From positions 500,687,043 through 500,751,042 of the forward strand of contig NC_058131.1 in NCBI RefSeq assembly GCF_016433145.1: 64,000 bases of DNA. The letters are read 5' to 3'. The position numbers were made by a program, and so were the translations under genes. Below are positions 6,436 through 64,000 of the stretch, one piece after another (positions within the stretch are counted from its first letter, which is position 1; every line of letters begins with the position of its first letter). The notes beneath the pieces were generated by a model. That model was not told the DNA's origin and searched no databases. It saw only the letters and a list, made by a program, of their open reading frames with translations. This DNA is from Gracilinanus agilis (Eukaryota).

Positions 6436-59829
<53,394 letters not shown>

Positions 59830-60902
59830 CTTTTCAGCAGCAGATAAAAAAAAGAAAAAGATTACAATTTTGCATATTAATTATTAGTAAAATGTTTTTA
59901 TTTTACATGTAACAAAAGGATTTTCACCCCTCTCTTTAGCTTATGCCTTCTGTAAGAGGCTTAAATTATTCCATTAATTGTGATAGAAATTAAAAGAGGA
60001 AATAAGAAAAATACAGGATCATAGATTTAGAACTGGAAGAGTCTAGGAGAGTGTTACTTCCTCAAGTTACAGATGAAGGAACTAAGATCCAGCAAAGTAA
60101 TTTAACCTGCTTAAGTGGTCAGTCAATAGTAGAGCCAGAATTCAAACCCAGGTCCTTTAATTCTGAACTTGGTATTCTTTTTACATCATCATACTGTCTC
60201 TCTAGGTTTTATGTTGTAAACTCAGTTTATCACCCTTTTTTTCTGTTTTATGCATTATATCAATTTTAAATGGAATTTTCAAGTCTATCCCTCCTTATAG
60301 AAAACCTATCATTTTAACTCCAATATACTCACAGGTATGCTATCTGCTTTTGAATCCTGGAACACCATAACCTCAAAAAATTTAAATGTGCAAACATTCC
60401 CACTCTGAGTAGAAAGATGTGTGGTGGACATCAAGTATATTAAAGTGTTACCAATGATGACTTTCATGTAAAAAAGTGGCCCTAAGGCCATTATGAAAGT
60501 AAGTATGTATGACTAGAAGTAGAGACAAAGTAAGAAAAATTATCAAAGTATCAAGATACTAAAAGAAAATGAGAAATATTTCTAATATGTGATAGAAATC
60601 TTTTGAGAAATTATTGGATAATTGAGTGGTATAACCTACTCAAGATGACAGGATGTGGAGGTTTGTAATCTGTGTTGATAGGAGAATGCACACCAATGAA
60701 ATCCACAATCCTTCAAAGTGTCAAAAATATCCATCCTTTAGCTTTTGTCCTGGGGTTGTGCTCTTCTGTGGCCTCAAACCCTAGTCCTCTTCCTATTATA
60801 CTGTGTGCTCTGAGATCATGCTTTCTTCATTGGGGGTGGGGGAATCTAGATCAAGTGCTATATCTATGCCATGCCTTAAAATACCTTCTCCCAACTCATT
60901 CT

Positions 60903-62297
60903 TTTTTTTTTTAATTTTTAATTTTTTAGAAAAATTTTTTCCATGGTTACATGATTCATGTTCTTGTTCTCCCCATCCCCACCCCCCCAGTAGACGACAC
61001 ACATTTCCACTGGTTTCTTCCTGTGTCATTGATCAAGACCTATTTCCATATTACTGATAATTGTTCTAGGGTGGTCATTAAGAGTCTACATCCTAATCGT
61101 GCCCACATCAACCCATGTGTTCAAGCAGTTGTTTTTCTTCTGTGTTTCCACACCTATAGTTCTTCCTCTGAATGTGGGTAGCGTTCTTTTCCATAAATCC
61201 CTCAGAATTGTCCTGGGTCATTGCATTGCTGCTAGTACAGAAGTCCATTACATTCGATTTTACCACAGTGTATCAGTCTCTGTGTATAATGTTCTCCTGG
61301 TTCTGCTCTTTTCACTCTGCATCAATTCCTGGAGGTCATTCCAGTTCACATGGAATTCCTCCAGTTTATTATTCCTTTGAGCACAATAGTATTCCATAAC
61401 AAGCATATACCACAATTTGTTCAGCCATTCCCCAATTGAAGGGCATGCCCTTGTTTTCCAGTTTTTTGCCACCACAAAGAGTGCAGCTATAAATATTTTT
61501 GTACATGACTTTTTCCCTATGATCTTTTTGGGGTACAAACCCAGCAAAGCTATGGCTGGATCAAAGGGCAGGCATTCTTTTAAGCGCTCTTTAGGCATAG
61601 TTCCAAATTGCAATTCAGAATGGTTGGATCAATTCACAACTCCACCACCAATGCATTAATGCCCCAATTTTGCCACATCCCCTCCAACCTTCATTACTCT
61701 CCCCTACTGTCATTTTAGCCAATCTGCTGGGTGTGAGGTGATACTTCAGAGTTGTTTTGATTTGCATTTCTCTAATTATTAGAGATTAAAACACTTTTTT
61801 ATGTGGTTGATAGTTTTGATTTCTTTATCCAAAAATTGCCTATTCATGTCCCTTACCCATTTATCATTTGGGGAATGGCTTGATTTTTTGTACAATTGAT
61901 TTAGCTCCTTGTATATTTGAGTAATTAGACCTTTGTCAGAGTTTTTTGTTATAGAGATTTTTTTCCCAGTTTGTTGTTACCCTTCTGATTTTAGTTGCAT
62001 TTTTTTGTTTGTAAAAAAACTTTTTAATTTAATGTAATTGAAATTATTTACATTTTGTAATTTTTTCTAACTCTTACTTGGTTTTAAAATCTTTCCTTTC
62101 CCAGAGATCTGACAGGTATATTATTCTGTGTTTGCCTAATTTTCTTATAGTTTCCTTCTTTATATTTAAGTCATTCACCCACTCTGAATTTATCTTGGTG
62201 TAGGGTGTGAGATGTTGATCTAAACCTAATCACTCCCATATTGTTTTCCAATTTTCCCAGCAGTTTTTGTCAAATAATGGATTTTTGTCCCAAAAGT
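60903..62297 (-). mobile_element. 5'-truncated L1_Mdo-like element (1.4 kb)
   Basis: ORF 61260..61613 (PFDPAIALLGLYPK...CPSIGEWLNKLWY) is the ORF2 C-terminus; poly(T) at 60902; TSD ctcccaactcattct/ctcccgactccttct. Confidence 0.92.
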
Positions 62298-62559
62298 CTC
62301 CCGACTCCTTCTACCTCTTGCTAGGAGAACAACAATCACACAACCATTCCCAGAAACCCATGTCCCATCTCCACAGATAATCTACCACTACTTGTAGCCA
62401 CCTCATAGTAAGCCTCCTCGAGTGAGAAGACTTGAGATGGTACTAGTGCTCTGAGCCTTTTCATCTCCTGCTTCATGCAGTGTGTATCCTGAGGAAAGGC
62501 TGCTTGGGGCCAAACCAGGAATCTGCCTTCTCCAGAAAGCAATCACTTCCATTTTTATC

Positions 62560-63770
62560 AGTACAAGGAATTTTTCATCTTTTGCTGTTAGCCCAATGTT
62601 CCAACTGGGATGTAGAGAACCTCCAAAGTAAAGTAACCTTCCTTTGGACTTTGGGCCTATCTCCTCCTGTGCTGGTCCTTTGAGGGTAGGAGAGTAGCAT
62701 TCTCCATTCAGTGACGAATGTTTTCACACCTGGTTATACCCTCCATATCCCAAGCACAATGATCTGTAGATCATCATTCAGATCCCACTCCATAATCCCT
62801 CCCATGTGATTCCTCATTCCCATCTCCCTAAAGTGTCTTACCCTAAAGTTTCATAACTTAACCCTGCCTTTCTACTTTGTTTTCTGAAATGCCTGTTCCA
62901 TAGGCAACAAATTTCCCTTCATCTTTAATCTATTCCTCTTCGACTGCTTCCATCTACTAACTTTTATTGAAACCTGACTTTACCCAGATGACACAGTCTC
63001 CCTGGTTACCCTTTTTAGTACTGTTGGTCATTGTTTCCTCCTTGAAACTTTTTTCTCTCTTGGTTTTTGGGATTACTCTCTCCTCCTTTTCTTTGCTGGA
63101 TCTTCCTCCAGATCACACCCTCTAATTGTAGGGATCCTCAGTATTGGGGCCAGACCAGGAATCTGCCTTCTTCAGAAATTGTAGGGATCCTCAGTATTCT
63201 GTTCTGGGCTCTATTTTCTTTTTACTCTATACTACTTTGCTTGGTGATCTAAGCTCCCGTGGATTTAATTACCTCTTTAATTACCATCTCTCTGCTGATA
63301 ATTCTCAAATCTACCTTTTCTGCTCCAAACTTTCTGCTGACTTCCAATCTTGCATCTCCAGCTGCCTTTCAGACATCTCACACTGCATGTCCAGTAGATA
63401 CTTTCATCTCAATATGTCTACCTTTACTTCTAACTCCCATTTCCCACTTTCCCTAGATGATATCACCCTTCCAGTCCCCAAGACTCACAATCTAGGAGTC
63501 ACTCTGGATTCCTCACTATTTTTCATCCCCACATCCAATCTGCTGCAAGGCCTATCAATTTCACCTCTGCAATCTGAAAAAAAAACCTGGTCCCACTCAA
63601 TTAACTTCAGTGGCTTCCAATTGCTTTTATACAAAATGCTGTCTGAGATAGAAAATCCTCTATAATCTAACTCTCTTTCTTTTCCAATTTCCTAATACCT
63701 TACTCCTGCTCTTCCATCCAGTGATACTAGCCCCCTGACTGTTTCAGGAATAAGACACTCTATCTTAGTT
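62560..63770 (+). mobile_element. L2 reverse-transcriptase relic
   Basis: ORF 63144..63665 has PQYSVLGS..LYT, YHLSADNSQIY and LGVTLDSSL, degenerate forms of L2 PQGSVLGP, YADD and LGV.LDS.L. Confidence 0.8.
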
Positions 63771-63786
63771 CTGGTCATTTTCTTTT

Positions 63787-63979
63787 TCATTTTTTTTTAA
63801 ATTTTAAACCCTTAACTTCTGTGTATTGACATAGGTGGAAGAGTGGTAAGGGTAGGCAATGGGGGTCAAGTGACTTGCCCAGGGTCACACAGCTGGGAAG
63901 TGTCTGAGGCCGGATTTGAACCCAGAACCACCCGTCTCTAGGCCTGGCTCTCAATCCACTGAGCTACCCAGCTGCCCCC
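63787..63979 (-). mobile_element. SINE1_Mdo-type SINE
   Basis: Perfect 17-bp TSD tctggtcattttctttt (63770-63786, 63980-63996). Confidence 0.92.
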
Positions 63980-64000
63980 TCTGGTCATTTTCTTTTGCTG

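Follow-up and report, generated by a model that had tools for sequence, protein, structure and literature searches.

A 9-nt element in an opossum EML5 intron is very likely the second microexon of a conserved tandem pair with SRRM4-type flanks

Can nine nucleotides within an intron be recognized as an exon, and which splicing regulators would then control them? The question is raised by positions 59821-59829 on the minus strand of a 64,000-nt window from the opossum Gracilinanus agilis (the window being the whole stretch of DNA analysed), for which a microexon with a combined SRRM4- and QKI-type cassette had been predicted. This segment very likely represents, in the opossum, a 9-nt EML5 microexon that is conserved and alternatively spliced, the second of a tandem pair. 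The core of the original prediction, a real and conserved two-piece EML5 microexon with SRRM4-type flanks, holds up, whereas its QKI half and its implied novelty do not.

The minus strand carries the third HELP-plus-double-propeller unit of a three-unit EML protein (Pfam; tblastn). Its exons share about 70% identity with EML6 proteins and 80-93% with P0057, the representative of a 90% cluster holding proteins named EML5 from several mammals. Moreover, the 26-residue linker peptide is identical in EML5 fragments of Naja (cobra), Colinus (quail) and Varanus (Komodo dragon). Being closer to the P0057 cluster than to EML6, and sharing its linker peptide with these sauropsids, the gene is identified by similarity as EML5, not EML6. 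A WD40-exon query against representative proteins was dominated by multi-repeat WD40 matches and returned no full-length EML5, and homolog searches with EML6-like or invertebrate full-length queries returned EML6 only, with no EML5. The EML5 fragments were obtained from a homolog search with fragment P0062 and from the cluster listing; no encoding contig is on record for the Varanus fragment (P0345), and the comparison leaves out two Logan fragments (P0381, P0382) of uncertain, possibly primate, origin.

All of the predicted elements are present on the minus strand. Read 5' to 3', they begin with TACTAATAATTAAT (59876-59889), a bipartite QKI-type element of ACUAAU followed by UAAU, 46-59 nt upstream of the acceptor. 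Next come GTAATC (59860-59865), at the 5' edge of the pyrimidine tract and 32 nt from the acceptor, and the U-rich tract itself (59843-59860), which is offset from the acceptor by a UGC/AAAAG block. TCTGCTGCTG (59844-59835) stands upstream of the acceptor AAAAG, whose last base is 59830. The 13 bases TGCTGCTGAAAAG (59830-59842) comprise two overlapping UGC motifs and then the weak, purine-rich acceptor (A at -3), and are proposed on sequence grounds to be the 3' splice site together with a candidate SRRM4/SRRM3 enhancer; UGCUGCUG lies at -13 to -6 relative to the exon, between the pyrimidine tract and the AG. The microexon, GGGTTCCAG (59821-59829), was read from the sequence and from orthologous exons, with a spliced copy in a transcript contig (L007), and it is followed by the donor GTAATC (59815-59820; CAG/GTAATC), likewise read from the sequence.

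The next constitutive EML5 exon (55960-56038, minus strand) lies 3.8 kb downstream of the microexon, starts with ACCACCAG and ends before GTAAGG. It encodes (R) plus the 26-residue peptide that forms the linker before the third HELP motif. The 9-nt exon has no stop codon, is phase-symmetric and falls within the 3-27 nt microexon size class. Once two bases from the upstream exon are counted in, translation across the junction gives R-G-S-R-P-P, which reproduces the reading originally proposed; the phase was taken from orthologs, the upstream constitutive exon and the 15-nt partner described below being outside the window. Inclusion would add three residues, converting the short form ...E-R-P-P... 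into ...E-R-G-S-R-P-P.... An (AC)14 microsatellite occupies 59040-59068, within the intron that separates the microexon from the linker exon; (AC)n tracts, which may or may not be orthologous to it, also occur in the corresponding EML5 intron of Dipodomys.

The opossum intron was compared with orthologous EML5 introns of two rodents, Dipodomys merriami (L001) and Myodes glareolus (L002), a bird, Colinus virginianus (L003), and a snake, Naja naja (L004). In all four, a 9-nt exon is found 2.0-6.2 kb upstream of the exon encoding PPVSR, at L001:15118, L002:9223, L003:3782 and L004:6659. Given as upstream flank, exon and donor, the sites read TATCTGCTGCTGAAAAG, GGGTTCCAG and GTAATC in opossum; CTTTGCTGCTGAAAAG, AGGTTCCAG and GTAATC in Dipodomys; CTCTGCTGCTGAAAAG, AGGATCCAG and GTAACC in Myodes; ACCTGCTGCTGAAAAG, AGGTTCCAG and GTAATG in Colinus; and ATCTGCTGCTGAAAAG, AGGTTCCAG and GTAATA in Naja. 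The 13 intronic bases of TGCTGCTGAAAAG, and with them UGCUGCUG, are invariant across the five amniotes, as is the GTAA of the donor, in which position +5 is never G. The exon consensus is [A/G]GG[T/A]TCCAG, and neither variable position alters the amino acid (Arg from AGA or AGG, Gly from GGT or GGA); the opossum exon begins with G, unlike the other four, which begin with A. The block from -14 to +14 is 89-100% identical between species, compared with 77-94% for the adjacent 79-nt coding exon. A pyrimidine-rich tract occupies the same place in 5/5 species, with a pyrimidine fraction of 0.63-0.83 over -45 to -15. The original prediction had staked itself on conservation of the flanking motifs in other amniotes, and for the UGC, acceptor and donor module this is what was found, including the UGC repeat placed directly before a weak acceptor.

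In a blastn comparison of the opossum intron with the Dipodomys contig, an island at 59861-59734 matches L001 15086-15207. The other matches are coding exons, an (AC)n microsatellite and short matches of 22-39 nt only, one of which is a colinear 25-nt block (59978-59954) about 100 nt upstream of the microexon. A second conserved intronic block, TCATTAATGAGCTATCTG (59739-59756, minus strand), lies inside the blastn island, 65-80 nt downstream of the donor in the five-species alignment (A1). Within it, CATTAATGAGC occurs in all three mammals and, in part, also in bird and snake. This block (59739-59756) matched no known motif, and it may be a splicing enhancer. Consensus folding of the five orthologous regions gave a weak hairpin (-4.9 kcal/mol) in which UCUG pairs with CAGG, without covariation, and this was not accepted as evidence for an RNA-structure mechanism.

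Splicing at the predicted borders is seen in assembled transcript contigs from public runs. The two contigs, L007 and L008, are rodent-like, and their microexons match the vole (Myodes) genome exactly. In L007, GATGAAAG, ACAGGGGGTAGTAAG, AGGATCCAG and GCCTCCAG follow one another, so that both microexons are joined at the predicted borders. In L008, the 15-nt exon is joined directly to the PPVSR exon and the 9-nt exon is skipped, which indicates that the 9-nt exon can be skipped independently. In the same contig, the intron 5' of the 15-nt exon is retained (L008:1-140) with the downstream introns already out, which suggests that the upstream intron of the 15-nt exon is spliced last.

The 15-nt EML5 partner is ACAGGGGGTAGTAAG in Dipodomys (L001:11675-11689) and Myodes (L002:6912-6926) and GCAAGGAGTTGTAAG in cobra (L004:3406-3420), 2.3-3.4 kb upstream of the 9-nt exon in these three species. 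It has its own pyrimidine tract and a GTAAGT or GTGAGT donor and, unlike the 9-nt exon, no UGC repeat directly at its acceptor. No copy turned up within 10 kb in quail, and sequence search and blastn showed it to be absent from 59830-64000 of the opossum window. The opossum 15-nt exon presumably lies beyond the window end, in an intron that carries repeat insertions. The open reading frame listing gives near-identical peptides in opposite orientation at 61099-61613 (+/-) and 24909-25394 (+/-), where a single interspersed repeat family is represented within EML5 introns by two copies, inverted relative to each other. The greater length, relative to rodents, of the opossum intron on the upstream side of the microexon is probably due to the 61-kb copy.

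At the protein level, the short form ...SVDER-PPVSR... occurs in EML5 fragments of Dipodomys, Carlito, Myodes and Varanus. The insert that the original prediction had ascribed to the long isoform, ER-QGVVRGS-RPP, is found in two assembled-read EML5 proteins, P0364 and P0376 (...SVDER-QGVVRGS-RPPVSR...), and a form with QGVVR and without GS is represented by P0383. The suggestion that this insert is assembled from two separately regulated pieces is borne out by the separately spliced 15-nt and 9-nt exons of L007 and L008 and by the vole, Dipodomys and Naja introns. Inclusion of the 9-nt exon by itself was seen in EML6 models and not among the EML5 sequences examined.

EML6 models show the same kind of variation at this junction. 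They read R (92 proteins), RQGIVKGSR (9, including two sharks), RQGIVK (7), RGSR (3: Polypterus, Cyprinodon, Fundulus) or RYGVVRGSR (1, a lemur model that stands for a cluster of 2,094 sequences). From sharks to mammals, the 5-residue and 3-residue inserts thus occur in each of the four possible combinations, and the 3-residue product is the one encoded by the opossum 9-mer. In genomic sequence, the EML6 9-nt exon GGGATCAAG (L005:1734-1742, L006:4652-4660) has an AAG acceptor with UGC motifs just upstream. The EML6 tandem microexons, 15 nt for QGIVK or YGVVR and 9 nt (GGGATCAAG) for GSR, resemble the EML5 pair in junction, phase, Gly-Ser-Arg product, AAG acceptor and nearby UGC. However, the flank differs (TTTGCTGCTCTCAAG in the lizard), as do the codons, and the EML6 intron can be far shorter, with 0.85 kb to the next exon in Neotoma. 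A 9-nt EML6 exon of matching architecture implies that the exon and its general architecture predate the EML5/EML6 duplication. Judged from these models and genomic exons, the tandem 15+9 pair is common to EML5 and EML6 since before jawed vertebrates diverged.

UGC is reported to be very strongly enriched in the first nucleotides upstream of microexons that depend on nSR100/SRRM4 (Quesnel-Vallieres et al. 2015, PMC4387716). The opossum exon resembles that class in its length and frame, in having UGC at a weak 3' splice site with a displaced pyrimidine tract, in its conservation and in its position within a surface linker that adjoins a domain (PMC4387716). It is 3-27 nt long and in frame, UGC occurs within the last ~20 intron bases, and exon and flanks are conserved; nothing sets it apart from the SRRM4/nSR100 programme of 3-27 nt microexons. 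Moreover, wild-type SRRM4 has been compared with an inactive deletion mutant in cancer cell lines (Head et al. 2021, PMC7935315, S6 Data). From inactive to wild-type SRRM4, inclusion (PSI) of a 9-nt human EML5 event (HsaEX6072470) rose from 0 to 50.6 and from 0.57 to 68.9 in two lines, and that of a 15-nt EML5 event (HsaEX0022381) from 3.2 to 32.6 (PMC7935315 S6 Data). A 21-nt EML6 event (HsaEX1013082) rose from 0 to 35.9 with wild-type SRRM4 (PMC7935315 S6 Data). HsaEX6072470 is presumed to be the ortholog of 59821-59829, matched by gene, length and 15-nt partner event and not by coordinates; the likeness to this VastDB pair lies in the same gene, the 9-nt length and the 15-nt partner, seen here in rodent and snake introns. 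With a human EML5 9-nt event already in a public splicing catalogue, the novelty implied by the original prediction falls away. The exon is very probably real, of an already known kind and, since its human copy is catalogued as SRRM4-dependent, not a new discovery; as it already appears in that catalogue and, for other species, among gene models and transcripts, it is a sound annotation point. No main-text description of the EML5/EML6 microexon pair was found in the literature searched.

Altogether, these data are consistent with a tandem pair, 15 nt and then 9 nt, in the intron preceding the exon for the linker that connects the second propeller unit to the third HELP motif. Use of the 9-nt exon would add Gly-Ser-Arg, changing ...DER-PPVSR... 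to ...DER-GSR-PPVSR..., and together with the 15-nt partner it would give ...DER-QGVVRGSR-PPVSR.... Nine nucleotides are too few, and the AAG acceptor is too weak, for the exon to be recognized by normal exon definition. Elements of the UGCUGCUG type, containing UGC, are the route by which neuronal SRRM4 and SRRM3 promote 3' splice-site recognition. SRRM4/SRRM3 most likely act here through the invariant UGCUGCUG, which would aid recognition of the weak acceptor and define the 9-nt exon. If UGCUGCUG is such an element, inclusion is to be expected mainly where SRRM4/SRRM3 are expressed, and we infer that the opossum exon would be spliced, SRRM4-dependent and neuron-specific.

The segment could instead be a pseudo-exon that arose by chance, with an AG...GT pair and a U-rich tract but never spliced, as might be favoured by an AT-rich window (30% GC here) and by weak sites, the donor being without G at +5 and the acceptor having A at -3. 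How often such combinations arise was assessed by scanning both strands of the 64 kb for AG...GT mini-exons of 3-27 nt with simple position-weight scoring, with minimum requirements of 4 bits for the donor, 75% for the pyrimidine content upstream and 2 UGC in the last 20 intron bases. Only 2/9,871 mini-exons in the window passed, namely 59821-59829 and a 21-nt candidate at 51089-51069, which argues that the motif combination is not a routine by-product of an AT-rich intron. In an intron-only scan, the single one of 184 in-frame candidates with such donor and tract quality was again 59821-59829. Since, in addition, 13 intronic and 9 exonic bases have been kept for ~300 million years with only synonymous exon changes, and identical borders are used in transcript contigs of another mammal, a chance origin is regarded as highly improbable. 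Conservation alone cannot tell an exon from a regulatory element, and the second conserved block 65-80 nt downstream could be taken to mean that the region lost its use as an exon in marsupials and persists as an intronic element controlling the 15-nt or the linker exon. However, the AG, the GT, the reading frame and the Gly-Ser codons are all intact in the opossum, and its sole exonic difference, G for A at the first base, retains Arg (AGG vs AGA), a synonymous pattern that fits coding constraint. Loss of exon use in marsupials accordingly deserves hardly any weight. The conserved module, the exclusively synonymous exon changes and the matching transcript borders together point to a genuine EML5 microexon.

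A further reading accepts the conserved microexon and gives QKI a major role, in competition with SF1 at the ACUAAU branch-site region. It draws on the ACUAAU and subsequent UAAU of opossum and on the ACUAAG (Phrynosoma, a lizard) or ACUGAG (Neotoma, a rodent) about 35 nt upstream of the EML6 9-nt exon. However, alignment A1 shows no TACTAATAATTAAT element in the corresponding columns of the four other species (Dipodomys, Myodes, Colinus and Naja), which read TATTAAAGG, TATTATGTG, ATCAGTATT and TATTAGTTT, while the UGC block 30 nt away is invariant. A closer and better conserved branch candidate is also available, 32 nt from the acceptor: TAATC, in the 59860-59865 region, is kept in 4/5 species of the same alignment, as GTAATC in Colinus and Naja. 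On this pattern, TAATC at the tract edge appears a likelier branch-point region than ACUAAU. No QKI data for EML5 were found in the literature searched. The proposed branch point and QKI core thus exists in opossum, but it is confined to 1/5 species together with its half-site, and a major role for QKI is unlikely, leaving at most a species-specific possibility of low probability.

With the SRRM4-type reading of the conserved microexon retained, a broader proposal can be put forward tentatively, as a possibility that is more doubtful than likely. The linker would be a four-state switch (0, +5, +3 or +8 residues) that predates the EML5/EML6 duplication. Its retention, in amniote EML5 with an invariant UGCUGCUGAAAAG acceptor module, would reflect the tuning in neurons, by the basic, phosphorylatable R-G-S-R or QGVVRGSR, of the contacts that the third HELP-propeller unit makes with microtubules or partners. 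The combinatorial neuronal code that the original prediction envisaged for the 9-nt exon and a 21-nt exon may likewise exist. Little work has been done on EML5, whose linker offers a defined place to look for isoform-specific behaviour of the tandem 15+9 pair. It is chiefly marsupial annotation that benefits; a real 9-base exon proved findable from raw sequence, and the structure of the EML5 linker insert is fixed as two separate microexons. The 21-nt candidate that also passed the scan, GAGACTCAGCAGACATGTCAG (51069-51089, minus strand), lies in the same gene, with UGCUGC 14-19 nt before a CAG acceptor and the donor GTAAGG.
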